Assembly: GCA_964035545.1 (NCBI GenBank)
Contig: OZ037766.1
Coordinates: forward strand, 30,742,773 to 30,806,772
Direction: 5' to 3'
From: Bugula neritina
Lineage: Eukaryota > Animalia > Bryozoa
DNA length: 64,000 nucleotides
The notes below the pieces were generated by a model, which saw only the letters and a program-made list of their open reading frames with translations, had not been told where the DNA came from and made no database searches. Position 1 is the first letter of the stretch. Every line of letters begins with the position of its first letter. This document shows positions 2,781 to 64,000 of this stretch, one piece after another. The position numbers and the translations under genes were made by a program.

Positions 2781-3647
2781 TTAATTAAACAACCCTTGAA
2801 GATATCCATAGCAAACCCCTGCTAAGTGAGCAGAATTCTCTACTTTCTGAGATGAACCTGCCATCATTTTATAAGCATCAAGGATGGCGCAAGGCCACAC
2901 AATGTACTTGGTTGGCACCTCCAGTGAGATTATCTCCTTCAACAAAGGCACAGACAACTTCACTTCTGGATACTCGGAAACTGTGTAGGCGTAGAGAGAT
3001 AAAATGGCCGCTGAGGCTCCTTGAGCCATTGGCCATCGCTTTGGCCGAAGAACGTTGCTGATGTAACTGCCTAAGCAGCCGAATAAACCGCCATTAGTGT
3101 ACACGTGAGCCATAGTGTAGGCATCTATAGGCATCGCTGCCTCTATTACCGTCAAAGCCAACATGTTCATACATATATGCTGGACATCAATGTGGTTAAA
3201 CACACTGCCAAACATAGAAGGAACTGCTGTCTTGCTGTAGACGCTACATATCAAATACTGTCTCTCAAATCGTCTGAACCTAGCCCAGTTATTCCTCTTT
3301 GCCATTTGGGAAATAGCAAAAACAGAAACATTAGCTAGAACGATTCCTTTGAATAGAGTATCCTTTGAAATCTTTTGCCTTGAATGGTCAGTGTAGAGTT
3401 CAGGATTCTTCTTCTTGTGGTAGGCGAGTAGCCAATTGCTACCAGCTGCAAAAGAGGCTACAAAGATGGTTGGTTTGACTAAAAATGATAAACGGTATTT
3501 CAGTTGCCCAGGCTTTTGGTTGCTGGAAGATTCAATAGTTTCAATGATAATGTTCTTGCGCTGTGATAGTAGCAACTTGAACTTTCTAGAACAAACTTTG
3601 CTGCTACAGTTCAAAGACCGTCCAGCTGCTGTAATTAATGCCAACAT
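2781..3647 (-). CDS. PARL: PARL-like mitochondrial rhomboid serine protease, single coding exon, 288 aa
   Basis: Basic/hydroxylated N-terminus resembling a mitochondrial presequence; SVFNHIDVQHICMNM (rhomboid HxxxxHxxxN motif); catalytic GASA (GxSx) and downstream SAHLAG His; several hydrophobic segments. Divergent, so it may be a paralogue. Confidence 0.8.
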   Translation of the reverse strand: MLALITAAGRSLNCSSKVCSRKFKLLLSQRKNIIIETIESSSNQKPGQLKYRLSFLVKPTIFVASFAAGSNWLLAYHKKKNPELYTDHSRQKISKDTLFKGIVLANVSVFAISQMAKRNNWARFRRFERQYLICSVYSKTAVPSMFGSVFNHIDVQHICMNMLALTVIEAAMPIDAYTMAHVYTNGGLFGCLGSYISNVLRPKRWPMAQGASAAILSLYAYTVSEYPEVKLSVPLLKEIISLEVPTKYIVWPCAILDAYKMMAGSSQKVENSAHLAGVCYGYLQGLFN

Positions 3648-4046
3648 CCCAACAGCCAGCCAGTGGGAGTGGTAGATCTGTTTTATTTAGCCTGGAAAAT
3701 GGTCAAATTATTCAATATAACAATACAATGTTTAATGCATTTCATATGAGTGCACGTAAATCATATTAGTTTGATGTATGAAATAATACTATTAGATACA
3801 CATTTTGAATTTTGTGCTTGTATTCAAAATATTAATCTAAATAGTAACTCATTACACCCACTCATTGTCTTTATTATAATATTATTTCAAAAAGAAAAGT
3901 GTTGTATAAACTTTTCGATAAAAAATTGTTTTGTTATAATAATTCAAGGTCTTCTTAATTAGCAAAAAATATCTCCAATCCAAAAATTGAAATTGCAAAG
4001 AAATTATAATTTTATATATGCAACGGTTTCTTATACATTGTGATGT

Positions 4047-6649: not shown

Positions 6650-7403
6650 TATAAAAGTAAAGAAGCCAAACACCCGCGTATAAACTAGGTGATGCTGACA
6701 TACCTTGGACAGACAAGACTCGCTATCTTGGTATCACGCTCCAGCAAGATCTAAAGTTTGACCAACACATCGCTCAAAAAACCAGCAAAGCAACCAAAAT
6801 TCTTGGGGCTATTAAATACACACTACATTCTGCACCTACCAAAAGCCGATTATTGGCATACACTAGCCTGTGTCGACCGATACTGGAGTATGGGGACACT
6901 CTATGGGATCCCACCAGTAAACAGACCATTAAATTCATAGAAAGTGTTCAACGGAAAGCTGTCTGCTTCATAAGTACTGTTAAAGGACGGGAAAGTGTCA
7001 CTGAAGCCAGAAATCTTCTTGAACTGGTACCACTAGAATCCAGAAGACGAAACCATCGAATGACATTACTACACAAAATTCTAGAAAATGAAACCAGCAA
7101 TAATACTTTATCTTCTAATTATGATGAGATCGTCAACAACCGATTAAATACAACTATGACCACTAGAGCTGCGAGCAGAGGACAGTTAACATCAATATCT
7201 GCAAAGACTACCACAACAGCTTCCTTCCCCGAACAATACGGGATTTGAGAATAAATATTCATGAATAATTAGAAAAAAATTGGTGATATGCTGATTCACT
7301 GCCTACCCACTGTAACACACTGTTATAAACGAAGCATTTAACTTACACATTTTTGTGATATCTAAATGTTCTATCGACACAGAGTGAGTACAGAGTGAGT
7401 ATT
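6650..7403 (+). mobile_element. 5'-truncated non-LTR retrotransposon (CR1/Jockey-like ORF2 C-terminus)
   Basis: Frame reads ...TRYLGITLQQDLKFDQHIAQKTSKATKILG...AYTSLCRPILEYGDTLWDP...IESVQRKA...LESRR, the typical post-RT region of LINE ORF2. Frameshift near 7210 (YHNSFLPRTIRD is in another frame); short tandem tail (acagagtgagt)x2; possible TSD agtctaat at 6642-6649 and 7404-7411. Confidence 0.88.
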
Positions 7404-8026: not shown

Positions 8027-52142
<44,116 letters not shown>

Positions 52143-53543: not shown

Positions 53544-56272
53544 ATGGCACCCTTCGGCTTCATACTAAGTAAGTACATATGTTTTACTATGAAAGTTTTA
53601 TTATAAAAGGATATATATCATTGTTTTAATGCGTAATGTGTGTTGTGACATGGTTTTGGCTGGTTTTTATATTGCCCCTCAGCCAATCAACTTTAAGAAC
53701 ACTACAAATGAAAAATATATAAGTAGAGACCTGATGGAGAAAAAGAACTACCTAGCGAGAAGATTACCATCTAGGATAGACATTTCCTCAAGTTATTGAA
53801 CAGCTAGCAGAATTGCCACTGTTGGAGTTTTAAAATATTCCACAATGTTTAGTTGAGATTATATAGCAAATTTTCTAGGATGAAATATTGTCCCTTTTGA
53901 ATTACTATTATTTATTTGATTAAAGACTATGTATGTATCTCATTATAGATGAATTTAGATGGTTTGTTAAAATAGCATTTGATTGAAAGCAAACTCACTC
54001 TTTCAGTCCAAAATGTTTATTTTTATCCCTGGGCTTATTTTCCTATGGTTGAAATATTAACTTCCAAGACTTTTTTGAAATGTTGCCACTACTAGTCATT
54101 GTTTTTTGTATTAGTCTACATGCAGAACTTTGCTAACTTCTAAATTTTGATTTTGTTGACAGTTGTTACAATCTTCCAAGTAGAAGGTCAAGGCGTGATG
54201 CACTTCAAGCGAAGTAGCCAGTTAGACAACTATCACTATGACTCTCTTACCCCCAGTAATCTGTACAGTGTGACTCACTGTGCCAGTCAGTGTCTAAACA
54301 ACGCTTTCTGTCTCGGATTTCTCTTCACAACCACCAAGTGTCGTTTAATCAAGTGTTTTAAGTCTCACATTCCGGCAGACTCTCAAGTTCTTCTAGAATC
54401 TTCTATTTATACAACCGATGCCACACCATCTCTGCAGAGCAACCTAGCTTTAGGTATGCAACCAGAACTGATGGCTTGATATAATAGTATCAGGGTTTGT
54501 TACATGCAGTTATAAATAGATTGCACTATATTTTAACTTCCTGCTGTTGATTAGTTGATCATTTTCTACAAACAACTTGCCTGTATTATAGATTTTTAAG
54601 GCTAAAAATAGCCAAATTTAAAATATATATTATAAATAGAAAGAATGCAAGTTGTAACTACACTAGAGCTTATTAGAGCTATAAATAGCCATCTATATAA
54701 ATAGAAACAATTCAAGTAATTATTACTAGTTTATAGCTTTATCTATACAGTTTTCATTTCCTTCTATAAATAGAAGGAAATGAAAACTGTTGGTAAACTA
54801 ATTCAAAGTAAAGATATAAATTGCAAGTCTTCTAGAATATGAAACATTTTAGGAGTTGCATTTCCTGAAACCTTGCTCCAATTTGCATTTAATATTAATC
54901 TTTTCCCCATCTATGTTATTTTCTGTTATGTGTATGTTTACTTTACTTAGCTTCACCAGATTGAAATATTCATTAATACAATTTTAATTGAAATTTGTTT
55001 GGTATTGAAAACTAAACGCATGCAACTAGTAATTAGAATATCTGTCCCATATTCAAGCCATGAATGAAAGCAGTCGAAAGCTGTAACTTTCAAAAAGCTA
55101 TAAATACTAAAGTCTTTTTTAACTTCTGTGTACTAAAACACAGACTGCCATAATTTTTCCATTTGAGCTTGAGCTCTGGTCAAGCAGAAGCCCTACCAAA
55201 ACTGAAACATGTTAGATAATATATAGCAAAGTAAGCACAATATAACAAATTCACGGTATGAAAAAGGAAGCAAATTGAATTATTTAAATAGGAAAGCCAG
55301 CTTGGCAAAGCTCTACCTTTAGACAAAGAGAAGCTGACCATTGTACTGATGGAGACTACAGAGCCAATTATGATCACCTCTGTCAAAGTGCTGACTCAGA
55401 TAGTCAGCCATGGTGGAGAGTTGACTTGGAAGATGTTTATTGTGTCTGGGCTGTGAAGATCGTGAACAGAGATGACCCATGTGAGTCATAGACATGTATT
55501 TCAGTTTGCAAAAGATATATTTGAAGTTTCGACTGGGCTAGTTGACCTTCTTAAAATCTAATTGGTTGATTTTAAAATACAGTCAATTTTTATCATTGGT
55601 AACTCTTCATAGCTAAAAAGCTTTTAAACATGTAGCACTACGTTGTACAAAACTTATAAACATGAGCTATAAGTCACCCTGACTTTAATTTTGTCATAAT
55701 TGGTAAAAATAACTTCCTTATGTAATAAAATACTTATTAAATGGTGTTCATGTTCACTTATGAAAATTAACAAGAGCCCATCATTACCTGGGCAGTAGAT
55801 TTATATTATCCATGGAGTGTTAATTGGAATGAGATATTCATTCTGCAGTTTTAATTGAAATAAAGTATTCCTACTCTTAAGAATAGCTCTAAATAAATTG
55901 ATAGCTACAAATTATACATTTTGATTAATTAATAAGCTTCAAAAGAAATTGAGTATTTGCTAATTGGCTGATATAACTAAACTAATGGTTTTGTTGATTA
56001 ACTAATCCCAAACTAAAATGGCTGCCGATTTTACAGCATATGGAATTCGCACAAAGAATGTTCTCATCACCGTATCTGCTGAAATTACAGACCTCTTTTT
56101 CACAGGAAACGATGATATATTCTGCAATTATCATCATGGTAGTTTAAGTACAACTGACCCTACTCTAATTGCATGTGATAAGTCAATGATGGGCAGGTAC
56201 GTGCAGTTAGAGCTATTAGTCGAGGGTGATACAGGTATAAATATGGCAGAAGTTGAAGTACAAGGATTATAA
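53544..56272 (+). CDS. Secreted PAN/apple plus F-type lectin (fucolectin-like) protein, 4 exons (53544-53568, 54163-54453, 55292-55480, 56037-56272), 246 aa
   Basis: Signal peptide MAPFGFILIVTIFQVEG; PAN-like CASQCLNNAFCLGF...KCRL; F-type lectin signature NLALGKPAWQSS...DG...QPWWRVDL...VKIVNRDD...GRYV...AEVEV. All introns phase 1. Confidence 0.85.
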
Positions 56273-57776: not shown

Positions 57777-60700
57777 ATGGATGCACCAAGCATTATGTGG
57801 TGCCAGTTTAGCCAGCACGTACCATGTTTTGTTACTATGTGGCAAGTTGGGAATTACCTGCTCACACTATCTCATCTGCTAGTTCAACTCGTCCCTGCTC
57901 AAGCGTACACATTCGAAGGTAAAACAAGCTTTATACATTCTTAGCTTTTTTGAAGTCTTAGTTTCAGCATATTGTAATCTGTCACTTGAAATGAATGGGA
58001 AAAATGTAAACTCAAGCTTCAGTCTCTTTTATATTTCACGCGTATTTGCAATTATTTTTCACTCAATTTGTAACACTGGCATCAGGGTGGTCTAAAACAA
58101 ACCTTAAATAAAGATGAAGTTAGTAAATGGTAGATGTAGTGGCACAAAAAGTGTTGCATATAATTTTAGATGTAGAGAAAGATAAATACTTGTAAATGTA
58201 GAGAAGAATAAGGTATTTAATGTACTTTTAGATGTAGAAGAATAGATAAGATAGCGAGTTTATTTGTAGATGTTCGAGAGAGAACCTGTACAGGAAATAG
58301 CATGACAGATTTCCCCGACGAGACTCTGATAACAAAGAGAAACTACCTGAGTAACAAGTACACCGGTTGTTACTATGTCAACGGAAACATAAACATACCT
58401 TCGCAGGTGTATCTGGGGAATGAACTTGACTTCCTGAATGACATCATTGATGTCTCTGGTTACATCAGATTGGAAGGTATACACTGTTTGCATGCTTAAA
58501 CCTCTTTCTGTTGGCTAACATATGTCTTTTTCTCTGCCTGCCTGCCTGTCTGTCTGTCTGTCTGTCTCTCTGTCTGTCTGTTTGTCTGTGTGTGTGTGTC
58601 TGTCTGTTTGTCTACTTACATTTCTCTCTCTCTCTATCTCTCTCTCTGTGTCTGCTTGTCTGCCTGTGTGTCCCCATGTTTGTCTGCTTATATTAAATAA
58701 ATCTGATGCAAAACTCATAATAAATTCAAATACTTTATTTAGACATATATACAATAATTTATAATGTAGATCAATGTTATTTTTATACTTTTTGTTTTAT
58801 ATACGAATTAGGCAGCATATTTCAATTTAAGTAATTTTATTGTTTTCAAAAGTTGGTACACATTCTCGCAGGTAGAGACACGTCACTGAGAGGAACTAAA
58901 GCTCTTGAAAAGCTGAGAACTGTAAGAGGTTCAGAGCTAACCTCGGGCAGTACGGAGAAGTCCCAGTACAGCCTTTTCATCGATATGTTAGGACCTCAAA
59001 CCGTCAGGTTGAAATCATTGTTGCGTAGGTTTGTGCATGGTTGTAGCTATTCTTTCTTGATTTCTAAACCATCTTTTACATGGAAGCTTTTTTTATAAAA
59101 AGTCAAAATAAAATTTGTTTGAAATAAAATTCAGTAACTGCATTTTACACACAAAACTGTTAGTGCAAACACTTCTAAACCTTTGCTTTTCTCACCAATA
59201 GGCAGTCATCAAAAGTAGTACATAATTCCCATTACAAATCTTTTGTTTATATTTGATGTTGACAATATTTTAGGCTCCATACATTTATTATTGCTGCAGA
59301 ATATGATATAAAAATTGCTTATTAACAGCCTACTCTAAACTATGTAAAACACTAATAGATTAATAAAAAGAGTTATATAGAAGTCTTGTAAGTTGGTTCT
59401 ACCAATCTTTTTTGTAGCACTGAGTGAATATAAAAAGTATATATACACCATATTTATAGTTTTTTTGTAAATTTGCTCTTGCATCAATCAATTTCAACAG
59501 AATCTTTAAAACTTAAAGCCAAACAGTTCTAATACATGTTTTATTTCTTTTAATAAAAACTCTCTGGCTCACATATAAAACTACAAACCAATTCCAAACA
59601 ACAAAACTAATTTGCAATATGTGAACGCACTTGTTTTAGACTTAGCACTTTTTAAACTGTAGGAATAGAAAGAGGAGATGTCTACATACGTTCCGATAAC
59701 TGTCACCTATCAACTATTGACTGGGGACCCCTACTAGCTTATCCCTACTTCCAGAGTGTCAACGTAACTTCACCACCAAATTATTGTACCTCCAGAGGTG
59801 AGCAAGAATATCTTCTACAAAACAATGTCATCAAAGTATATCACTTTATATATGATGTGATTTCATTTTGATGAAGTCAAAAACTATTAGACTGGAAGCT
59901 TTAAATCATTTGTACCTAAACTTTAAATTAACGCTAGCGCTTTTTGATTAATAATATCATGTCTACGTGCTGTCCTTTGGTTGCCATCAATCACCTATGT
60001 GTATGCAACAAAACTATAATGCAGTTCGTTTTAATAGTTCTTTGTCTGATGCAAATATTCATCTACAATATAGCTGAAAATACATATAAACTACGTGTAA
60101 TAGTCATAATAATTATACTAATTCATATTATTGTTTCTATAACCTTGCTGTCACTATAGAACAGTGTGTGGAGTAGAAGAGAGGTGTGGGAAAAACTGTT
60201 AGTAATTAATCAATGAGGTGTCAAACGACATAAATCAACCAGCCTGTACGCTAAGACAGTGCAGTGTTGGAGATTTTAATGCTAACCGAGTGTTTTGAAA
60301 CTCAAACTGTAACTGATGCATGCAACTATAATTAGCATATTTTGTGCATGGAGTCACAAAACATCCTCTTGTCTTCTTAAGGGTTAACCTTGCCGTGGCG
60401 CCGGTGCATATTTTTAGTAACATCACTAATAAGTTTCAATCCTTGGCCTGCTTGTGTAGTGAAAAAGGTTATATCTAAATTAGGGTAAGAACACGACGTT
60501 TTGCATATTATGTTCTTTCTAAATTTTACAGATGTTTTGCAATATACTTTATTAGTTAATATAGTTAGTTGAACACTCAAATCTTGTATAATAATTTATC
60601 TTGTAGATGAATCAGTTTGCCCCACTGAGTGCTCACATGGTCACTGCTGGACTGACAACCCTGGCAACTGTCAGTTAAATTGTCACTTTGCATGTGGTGA

Positions 60701-63700
60701 CCTTGGTTGCTATGGTGAAGGTGAACAAGAGTGTTGTCATAGAGATTGTGGTAGGACATGCAATGGATCACAGTCTACAGACTGCAGATTGGTGAGCAAC
60801 TGAGTGTCAGATTTTGCTAATATGGTAAGGGGTGTATATAGCAAGGGGTGTATTATAGCAAGTGGTGTATATACGTAGTAAGGGGTGTATAGAGCAGAAG
60901 TGTAAATAACAAAGGGTGTATATAGCAAGGGGTGTATATATGACAAGGAGTGTATATAACAAGGAGTATATATAACAAGGAGTGTACATAGCAAGGGGTG
61001 TATATGGCAAGGAGTGTATATAGAAAAATGTTTGTATAAGGCATGTGTTTAACAGGAAGTGTATAAAAATAGTGTAAAGTGATTGTACCTATTAAACACT
61101 GTATACAGCAATGAGTTCGCGGCAGCCTAGCCAAAGTATATGACAGAAAACATTTCTTTAATTTTATTTTACACCCTTTTTTAATTTAAAGTTGAATAAA
61201 CTAGCAATTTTACAAGTTACAATAGCAACTTTCTACTTTTAACTTCATTTTTAAAGTCTCAATTTTCATTTGGTATCTCCATTTATATCAAGTTTGACAA
61301 AAAATTTAAATACAATTGCATTAAGACTATTATTGAAATATCTAAGTAGACAGCATTAAATTATTTTCTCTAGATTCTAGACCATGATGTCTGGTTTGTT
61401 TGACAGTTTGATGGATGCTCAGGGTACTATGACTCTAGTGGAAAGTGTCTAGACACATGTACAGATGAATATAGTTCAGGTTTAGAGAGATTAGCACAGA
61501 GAGTTGCTCTAAACAACAAGTTCTGTCTTGACAAATGCCCAAAAGGTAGTTTCTGTATAAAAGCTAAGCATTTCATTTGAATATCTTCATTCAGACAAAT
61601 ACTTGATTTTTGCTGCTGAAAATTTAAATTCAACCTATAAACATTTTGCTTACCTAAAAAGCAAATTTGTAACTAGCACTAGCATCTTTACGTTGTTTAA
61701 AAACTGCTGCCAATAGTTGAATATTTTATTTTATGCATATAGTTGTGGTTTTGATTATGTGTACATAATCTGCAAGTACTATAGAAGCTGTAGAACTTAG
61801 AATCAGCATGTATTATAGCCTAAATATATTATAGCTATTAAGTATCATAGCTATTATAGCTAGCTTAGAATGTAGATAACACTGATTGGTGCCGATGAGA
61901 TTACCACTTGACTATAGCTGATGATATACATCTACACAATATATAATTTAACAATCGTTAGCTTTAGCATATAATATAATATCTTAATACATTGTAATAC
62001 AGAAAAATATTTTTCTGTCCAAAGGAGATGGAAACTTTGCACTAAACATGACAGCCATGAAAAGTAGGTCATATTACGAGGTCTTCTCTGCTAACAAGAT
62101 GATAAGTCAAGCTGCCGCTGCCGTGGATGGACTAACAGACATTGGTGACCTCTCCTTGACCCCAGAAACAACCAACCAATGGTGGACGGTCAAACTTAGA
62201 CAACTTATTGAGCTTCTCTTTGCAAATGTTTACTTACAGAAGAGAGATTCTGAAGATGCATGTGGTGGGTTATACGCAGCACAGTCAAATCCCACCAAGC
62301 CTTGATTTTAAATATCAGAATATTTATATATTTTTTTATTCTGCATGATAACATTCTAAAACTGTCTTAACCCTTCAAACCTCATAACATATTTGAACTA
62401 AAGAAACTACTTTGTAAATCATCAACATTGAAGATGCATTTACAATACTGGGGTTTTTCTAAATATTACATTTAGATGTGTAAAATGTTATATAAAAACC
62501 TAAACGTTTGGGCTATCAAAAATTCCTTTTACAAATCAGAAGCTTTAGCAAACTCTTGTGGAGTTGTAGGTCACTACTCCCTGAGAGAGACTCATTACCT
62601 GATCTCAAACTTGACCTACATAAGAGATGACCCTCACCCTGGTAACCCTGGCTGGAAATCCTGCACCTACCGGCATGACAGCTCTTTAACAGAGTTTACT
62701 GTAGTTTGTGACGAGTATGACCCCACCCCTGTAACTAAGCACTTTGCTATAAGGACCACAGGGCAATTTGCTGGTGGAATACAGCTAAGAGAAGTTGAAG
62801 TTTTTGGACTGGGTAAATGTACTAACAACTGGGCATATAGAATAACAATTATATCTTAGTGTATAACTAATTTGCATTATAAAATAATCTTTAGTTGATA
62901 TACTGTAGCAATAATCTTGAGTAACCAGTACAATATTATTTTCTCTTGCAGTGATTGAATGTTACAAAATGGTAAAACAAGTTGAAATATCACACAAGGA
63001 AAGCTAGTTATAATTTAAGAAAATATTTTTAATTATTTTAAATAAAAGATTTTCAAAAACCTATTTAAAAACAAACTTGAAGTAACACTATTTCATGGCC
63101 AGTACCTGTTGTAGACATTTTTGATTTATCAATAAAAGGGAAAAAATGTAGAAATAAAATTAGGAGAAAGTTTTGTTTTTCAATTAAAAGTACTAGTTAC
63201 AATGTGAAGTTGTCCTATTGATATAAATACAGGTCTGCTTCTATGATATAATTGAAATCAATTACACATTTTATAAATACTAGCATAAAGAGTTCACTGT
63301 AAATAGCATTTTGAATTTTAAAATCAATTTAACACAAAATACAGTCTGTAATAAAATTAGTTATGATTAGTTACAAGGCAGTTCTTTTCATTGCAAGTAA
63401 GATAAGTATAAATAAAATTATAAATTAAATAGAATAGCAGATATGAAAATAAAAAATGCAATGCATCTTTTAAATACTATAATGTTTTCCAAGTATTACG
63501 GAGTTATCCTACATTCATCTGTAGAAAACATAAACTTAGCTACCACAGAGACGAATGTGGGAACTTATTCTAACAACCAGGGACAAGCATCAGTACTAAA
63601 TGATGGCAGAAGAGATTCTGCGAGTACGTTCAGGGCGGCATCATCTTTCTGGGCGCTATCATTTGGTCGCGACGTGAAGTTGTCATATGTGAAGATATTT

Positions 63701-63740
63701 CTTGACTCTCACACAAACCTCTGTTCTTCTCAAGACTGCA
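57777..63740 (+). CDS. EGFR-like L domain plus furin-like Cys-rich domain plus at least two F-type-lectin/F5-8C-like domains; 3' end beyond the window (exons 57777-57918, 58270-58476, 58872-59024, 59663-59797, 60607-60791, 61407-61545, 62025-62264, 62570-62812, 63525-63740)
   Basis: Signal-peptide-like ...LLVQLVPAQA; CTG...KYTGCYYVNGNINI...LDFLNDIIDVSGYI, LEKLRTVRG, IERGDVYI...CHLSTIDW (EGFR domain I); CPTECSHGHCW...CCHRDCGRTCNG...CLDTC...CLDKCP (domain II); then NFAL...AVDG...WWTVKL...LREVEVFG and NLA...LNDG...FWALSF. Phases are compatible throughout. Confidence 0.8.
58533..58672. repeat. Compound (CTGT)n/(GT)n/(CT)n microsatellite
   Basis: Direct reading. Confidence 0.9.
60825..61025. repeat. 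~18-bp minisatellite (caaggrgtgtatatarc)
   Basis: Direct reading. Confidence 0.85.
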
Positions 63741-64000
63741 GTAAGTTGAACAATATGTCTAGTGACAGTTATAAAATGGGCTTTGGTTTTAGGCATTATA
63801 TAAGATTATCTGTTATTGTAGAGAGACAATATGTGCTGAAATAGTCATTTCAAACCAAATTTATTTAGCAGAGTATAAACAGTGCTGTCAAAAGTATAAT
63901 AGGCTTACAATGCAATTATATGAAAAAAATAAAATGCGGTTTGCAAGGTTTTGAATGTTGCTGTCTGAGCATGTATTTAAAAATCTGTAATTGTTACTGG

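Follow-up and report, generated by a model that had tools for sequence, protein, structure and literature searches.

At the right edge of a 64,000-nucleotide stretch of the AT-rich, 216-Mb genome of Bugula neritina (C2:30742773-30806772; this whole stretch is called the window, its first letter being position 1), we modelled a plus-strand gene predicted to encode a complete ErbB-type ectodomain of the order L1-CR1-L2-CR2, in which two receptor L domains (L1 and L2) are each followed by a cysteine-rich region (CR1 and CR2), with a pair of F-type-lectin-fold modules inside CR1. The gene anatomy as modelled is held with high confidence. The reading as a whole, that of a constrained, kinase-less and probably membrane-anchored ErbB-type ectodomain protein with a lectin pair in CR1, is likely, and the role proposed below for the protein at the cell surface is put forward more tentatively.

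Results

Organization of the ectodomain

From 57777 onwards, the plus strand holds a series of open pieces with GT-AG borders, including every exon named in a preliminary description of the window. As the gene crosses the right edge of the window, 30 kb past that edge were added, and the pieces then formed a chain of 19 GT-AG-bordered exons (A to S) with 1195 open codons, running from 57777 to a stop codon at 74294-74296. All positions are window coordinates, extrapolated beyond 64000 (a position in the added piece, L002, equals the coordinate minus 63800). The exons were joined computationally for the reading frame, the stop codon and the counts of cysteines and sequons, and similarity searches were performed exon by exon. 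The first exon, the acceptor of exon R and the 3′ end of the model are tentative.

Exon A (57777..57918, +) provides an ATG and a weak candidate signal peptide and is open up to a phase-1 donor (AAG/GTAAAA). Exons B (58279..58476), C (58872..59024) and D (59663..59797) were assigned to the first part, the middle and the end of L1, respectively. Exon B is 38% identical to the L1 exon of a paralogue, C2u, and the profile of this exon and two paralogous exons retrieved from the PDB the L1 domain of human EGFR (E 1.3e-8), followed by fly EGFR and ErbB2-4; the insulin receptor was not among the 60 matches listed. Exon C is an open reading frame with an L-domain-type L..LR.VRG motif, whose borders were chosen because they are the sole phase-compatible pair, and exon D is an open reading frame with an acceptor, a donor (GAG/GTGAGC) and a weak paralogue match. 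Exon E (60616..60791), the first part of CR1 (domain II), matched Pfam Furin-like with 27.0 bits (cut-off 26.8; E 4.6e-6) and is 36-39% identical to paralogue exons. Both the EGFR-type L1 domain and the furin-like domain II of the preliminary description were thus recovered by profile.

Exon F (61407..61545) adds a CR1 module with the cysteine pattern C-x9-C-x3-C-x21-C-x3-C-P-K, which is kept in four paralogues, and a phase-1 donor. Its long inter-cysteine loop is presumably the counterpart of the EGFR dimerisation arm, judging by a by-eye alignment of cysteine spacing with the human sequence. The exon F profile had no significant PDB match, PDB searches with single exons F, K and G were blank or non-significant, and single-exon Pfam searches missed L1 and most lectin exons.

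Domain III had been thought to be replaced by the lectin modules. However, the end of CR1, L2 and an ErbB-type CR2 follow the second lectin module. Exon K (64569-64808, extrapolated; L002 769-1008) was assigned to the end of CR1 and the start of L2, exons L and M (68980-69157 and 69665-69852, extrapolated) to L2, and exons N and O (70744-70958 and 71301-71437, extrapolated) to CR2, all on the plus strand. The exon K profile matched IGF1R residues 266-332 at 6.9e-10 and the insulin receptor at approximately 1e-8 (range 7e-10 to 2e-8 for both), and its match to EGFR 278-345 was weak (E about 0.1), in an alignment starting from about EGFR residue 274. The L2 exons matched Pfam Recep_L weakly, below the cut-off (E 0.0028), and the CR2 exons matched Pfam Furin-like (8e-7) and ErbB3 domain IV (3e-7). 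Tested exon by exon, the gene shows the ErbB/EGFR ectodomain order L1-CR1-L2-CR2 with two extra domains interrupting it. Because L2 and CR2 lie downstream of the lectin exons, the lectin pair would be an insertion in domain II that leaves both L domains available, and the ectodomain, as read from its exons, is a complete L1-CR1-L2-CR2 unit with the lectin pair inside CR1. A truncated chimera carrying lectin modules in place of domain III agrees with the window alone, inside which nothing comes after the lectin exons, but is hardly credible given that the K, L2 and CR2 exons come next on that strand, with phases that fit and in an order shared with the paralogues.

F-type-lectin-fold modules

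Two F-type-lectin-fold modules, each of two exons, lie between exons F and K; the introns that flank these exons, like all introns from F through L, are in phase 1. Exons G (62025..62261) and H (62543..62812) form the N-half and C-half of module A. The intron ahead of it, noted previously as a short phase-1 intron of about 480 bp, measures 479 bp between 61545 and the exon G acceptor at 62025 and is in phase 1 on both sides. The lectin-like domain seen previously at 62025-62812 has the F-type fold by profile, but is split into these two exons and does not form a single block. For exon H, acceptor 62543 was preferred to the rejected acceptor 62540 because donor 62261 gives a Ser codon with 62543 both in this species and in the relative compared below, and a stop in the split codon with 62540. 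Module B starts, as had been noted, at 63525 with its N-half, the phase 1-1 exon I (63525..63740), and the gene leaves the window within intron I-J (63741..64000), so that the module is completed beyond it by the C-half, exon J (64038-64316, extrapolated).

When N-half exons of the present gene, of a paralogue and of this genome's receptor phosphatase genes were combined into a profile, it matched FBP32 (1.6e-10) and eel agglutinin (1k12; 1.4e-5) in the PDB, and also pneumococcal and S. mitis fucolectin domains. Compared by hhalign with F-type reference N-halves, the query being outside the reference set, the N-half of module A reached 93.6%; for module B, the C-half reached 97% and the N-half just 47% (E 2e-4). 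The best single-exon Pfam match among the lectin exons was that of exon G to PF22633 (E 0.016). The lectin C-half profile had no significant PDB match, and the full-length database proteins found by it gave PF22633 and PF00754 at 57-92 bits. Furthermore, exon H shows 33-38% identity to its counterparts in a paralogue and in phosphatase-receptor genes.

The fucose-binding motif of F-type lectins consists of a His followed by R-x-D-x4-R/K (PMC5712786). Module A has Leu at the His position, retains the first Arg and has no basic residue at the last position, and module B has none of the three residues, with Ser at the His position. Within the calcium motif h-h-D-G-x, D-G is retained in both modules (AVDGL and LNDGR) and the flanking residues deviate. 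Since the fucose triad is missing in both modules, fucose is an improbable ligand, and something other than a sugar may be bound. Sugar binding by the modules thus appears doubtful, and the earlier idea of a glycan-sensing receptor is weakened, as neither module keeps the His-Arg-Arg triad.

A separate small gene lies upstream at 54144-56269 (+), encoding a hydrophobic leader, a PAN/apple domain (Pfam PAN_1, 1.4e-4) and then an F-type-lectin-like domain in two exons, 55288-55488 (..PWWRVDL..) and 56006-56269 (..EVEVQGL before the stop), in which the fucose-motif His is missing. We considered whether this gene might supply the 5′ end of the receptor-like gene and rejected the idea, because its last exon is closed by a stop and because, in the paralogue, a separate leader exon is present near L1. 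Its existence would also suit the view that the lectin exons of the receptor-like gene are themselves a separate gene, nested in an intron. Such nesting is nevertheless highly improbable: the interval from 61545 to 62025 contains neither a start codon nor a signal-peptide exon, the phases agree at either end, and eight paralogues are arranged in the same way.

Insertion site

Exon F ends in ..C-x3-C-P-K plus one base, and exon K starts at the residue aligned with about EGFR 274. In EGFRvIII, exon 1 of EGFR is joined to exon 8 and a new Gly precedes NYVVTDH (PMC2959087), and this new Gly at exon 8 implies that the human exon 7/8 border also splits a codon. We infer that the lectin exons occupy a phase-1 intron matching human EGFR intron 7, at the exon 7/8 border. 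In a paralogue approximately 20 kb downstream, F-like and K-like exons are joined over a 500-bp phase-1 intron with no lectin exons, and by its exon order this lectin-less paralogue reads as the empty state of the same insertion site. In the phosphatase receptors, the lectin modules are built of two exons with phases 1-1-1, as in the present gene.

We propose exon shuffling as the origin of this arrangement. The lectin pair would have entered the phase-1 intron equivalent to EGFR intron 7, right behind the dimerisation-arm-like module, and its source may have been a pool of two-exon F-type modules also used in this genome's receptor tyrosine phosphatases. If true, this would be a clean and datable case of exon shuffling, in which a two-domain phase-1 cassette went into an ancient EGFR-type phase-1 intron at the very border used by EGFRvIII in human tumours, and the L-CR-L-CR scaffold would tolerate approximately 340 added residues beside the dimerisation arm.

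Paralogues

A genome-wide profile search found Furin-like, lectin C-half and K-type matches aligned in that order at eight loci on C2 (30.57-30.68 Mb) besides this gene. This cluster, established from match coordinates, lies 130-235 kb upstream, the gene at the window edge being a ninth member at a distance of 125 kb, and two further loci were found on C6. The paralogues are only 35-40% identical and lie in tandem clusters. Paralogue C2u has the same domain order, with introns F to L also in phase 1, and encodes a mucin-like stalk and a clear membrane span, together with a Tyr-rich tail that has no kinase.

Related exons also occur in other settings. The downstream paralogue at L004 1030-3340 (+) has CR1-end, L2 and CR2 exons, with no lectin or L1 exon visible and a further K-type match at C2:30838656; this could be a member lacking lectins or a gene composed of repeated half-receptor units. 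At C6:9.41-9.60 Mb, about 17 K-type exons are spaced at approximately 3.5 kb with just two weak lectin matches, which fits giant genes of repeated CR-L units. At C3:7.12-8.12 Mb (L007-L018), 13 lectin C-half matches fall among phosphatase-receptor genes, and the four genes inspected there combine F-type-lectin modules with fibronectin III repeats, a membrane span and tyrosine phosphatase motifs.

3′ end and sequence constraint

Exons P, Q and R (71937-72115, 72277-72405 and ~73471-73668, extrapolated) form the membrane-proximal part, and exon S (74118-74296, extrapolated) encodes a hydrophobic stretch of approximately 17 residues (74222-74275), followed by nine codons and a conserved stop. No kinase motifs (HRD, DFG, GxGxxG or related) were found in six frames from 57 to 93.4 kb. 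Extension past 64000, suggested in the preliminary description as a check for a membrane span and a kinase, supplied a candidate for the former and no sign of the latter, and the protein is predicted to be kinase-less and probably membrane-anchored. The next same-strand genes are unrelated to the receptor-like gene and consist of two tandem Rost/FAR-17a-AIG1-like membrane protein exons (L003 4827-5303 and 9299-9775, +), which precede the next EGFR-like gene.

The gene was compared with two metagenome/Logan contigs of a relative (82-84% DNA identity), covering exons F-G-H and I-J. The exons are 87-93.5% identical with 0 indels (93.5% for F, 89% for G and 88% for I), the introns are 74-84% identical with 7-56 gap columns, and all splice sites are conserved. 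The dN/dS values were 0.18, 0.31, 0.44, 0.34 and 0.10 for exons F, G, H, I and J, respectively, and 0.24 over the five exons at a dS of 0.28. In addition, the hydrophobic segment, the stop codon and a GTAAGT inside the last exon are all conserved in a relative. These patterns indicate that the gene is intact and under purifying selection. A silent or decaying gene copy would suit exons without cover in an RNA-labelled run and a weak signal peptide, but is very unlikely with a frame open over 19 exons, no indels in the compared exons, splice sites kept and a dN/dS of 0.24 when dS is about 0.28.

Neighbouring features of the window

The remainder of the window contains a large attractin/MEGF8-like gene at approximately 8000-52000 (+), with Kelch repeats, PSI and laminin-type EGF domains and a membrane span near 51.2 kb, a single-exon rhomboid-domain open reading frame of 301 aa at 2784-3686 (-; Pfam 1.3e-14) and a UBA-like exon at 129-509 (-; 4.5e-12). 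A 195-aa open piece at 6661-7245 (+) resembles by eye the C-terminal part of a retroelement reverse transcriptase and had no Pfam match. Long (TA/CA)n and TGC/TGT-type simple repeats at 13000-13640, 45720-46350 and 58500-58700 give rise to spurious long open reading frames in several frames. Within the K-L intron, word depth at extrapolated window positions 65116-65500 (L006 5517-5901) was 20 to 250 times that of the surroundings in both sequencing runs compared, a DNA run and a run guessed to be RNA, and this piece is probably a high-copy repeat.

Discussion

The evidence assembled here favours an intact, kinase-less, probably membrane-anchored protein with an ErbB-type ectodomain and a lectin pair inside CR1. 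Several observations weigh against this reading. Exon K is closer to IGF1R and the insulin receptor than to EGFR, and the label ErbB-type therefore rests on L1, CR2 and the domain order. The signal peptide of the preliminary description has its ATG at 57777, and is still the weakest part of what had been described, with a long N-region and a hydrophobic core of just moderate strength. At the other end, the acceptor of exon R was guessed, the hydrophobic segment is short with more basic residues before it than after it, and splicing at the conserved GTAAGT within the last exon could reach a further tail exon. Over 5,901 bases, the RNA-labelled run covered no exon apart from a 100-base piece of exon K (93% identity); this cover is best read as a genomic contig of a relative, and the run is probably a relative's DNA. 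Finally, all lectin exons are in phase 1-1, so that skipping them keeps the frame, and a non-catalytic surface-binding function is itself something that we infer from sequence, with a confidence somewhat short of even.

The phases bear directly on the possibility that all four lectin exons serve as cassettes, the gene yielding a plain L1-CR1-L2-CR2 isoform along with a lectin-bearing isoform of one or two units. With introns F to K in phase 1, an F-K join, or the loss of G-H or I-J, keeps the frame, and the lectin-less paralogue shows that the plain form is viable. We regard this as a minority possibility, as the lectin exons are without indels, have dN/dS values of 0.10-0.44 and are found at the same place in nine genes. 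Their conservation and shared place would show that they are used, though not that they are used constantly.

Considering these results, we propose the following scenario for the function of the protein. Rather than a growth-factor kinase receptor, the protein would serve in binding or recognition at the cell surface, without catalysis. ErbB-type back-to-back dimerisation would be expected to be hindered by two bulky domains next to the arm, and the lectin pair may offer a new, non-fucose binding surface. The preliminary description had also raised a decoy or modulator of EGFR signalling, and the protein might hold EGF- or insulin-like ligands between its two L domains and give no signal, in the manner of the kinase-less L-domain proteins of Caenorhabditis elegans. 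Both L domains and both cysteine-rich regions are present, no kinase was found between 57 and 93.4 kb, and such action has been proposed for kinase-less L-domain families (PMC9262388). However, with identities of only 35-40% and tandem clustering, the paralogues would suit diverse targets more than a small set of conserved growth factors, and we consider the decoy unlikely.

A growth-factor-receptor scaffold may have been turned into a fast-diversifying, non-catalytic recognition family in this colonial animal, directed at self/non-self, a symbiont or microbes, with the lectin pair as the variable binding head; this is speculative, with a probability well below even. If the family is expressed, a colonial invertebrate would possess a hitherto undescribed class of kinase-less surface receptors assembled from parts of growth-factor receptors. 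Its relevance to receptor evolution and to invertebrate recognition systems lies, at present, in an architecture rather than in a function.

Comparison with known systems

Literature searches revealed no protein that combines F-type lectin domains with domains of the receptor L or furin-like type, and nothing relevant on kinase-less variants. A representative search of 1.84 billion proteins with the lectin C-half profile gave 45 matches, none with L or furin-like domains, an absence that is weak evidence because most matches are exon-sized fragments. The long matches among them are multi-lectin, lectin-fibronectin or lectin-phosphatase proteins, and the contigs behind two foreign matches are shorter than 2 kb, with no neighbouring genes visible. 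The impression of the preliminary description that the architecture is undescribed was thus sustained: no published description or matching database protein was found, and its nearest concepts appear to be kinase-less L-domain families and mosaic F-type lectins.

The IRLD proteins of C. elegans are an expanded kinase-less L-domain family for which ligand binding has been proposed (PMC9262388). The Bugula gene likewise encodes an L-domain protein without a detected kinase, and the two, from different phyla, are likened by architecture. The IRLD family is not known to have a lectin-fold insert.

The F-type lectins (eel agglutinin, 1k12; striped-bass FBP32, 3cqo; mosaics such as Drosophila furrowed) belong by profile to the same domain family as the Bugula modules, which, in contrast, lack the full fucose motif. 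Tandem pairs and mosaic proteins are usual in the F-type family, and a text search of the reviewed architectures gave neither receptor L nor furin-like partners (PMC5712786). Module A has its closest relatives in the F-type-lectin receptor tyrosine phosphatases of the same genome (C3, 7.1-8.1 Mb; 33-38% identity), which share its exon structure. In those phosphatases, however, the lectin modules are N-terminal and are followed by fibronectin III, a membrane span and phosphatase domains.

The insulin receptor and IGF1R give the best match for the exon spanning the end of the cysteine-rich region and the start of L2. Their L2 is followed by fibronectin III with no second cysteine-rich region, whereas the Bugula L2 is followed by an ErbB-type CR2. 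The ErbB/EGFR proteins (human EGFR and ErbB3, Drosophila EGFR and C. elegans LET-23) share the L1-CR1-L2-CR2 order, L1 of the Bugula gene being nearest to EGFR and CR2 to ErbB3 domain IV. Compared with them, the Bugula gene has no detected kinase, a lectin-fold pair in CR1 and a tail that may be very short, and its identity to them is too low for single exons to match solved structures. A phase-1 intron follows ..CP[KR] in the Bugula gene, as at the exon 7/8 border of human EGFR (PMC2959087).

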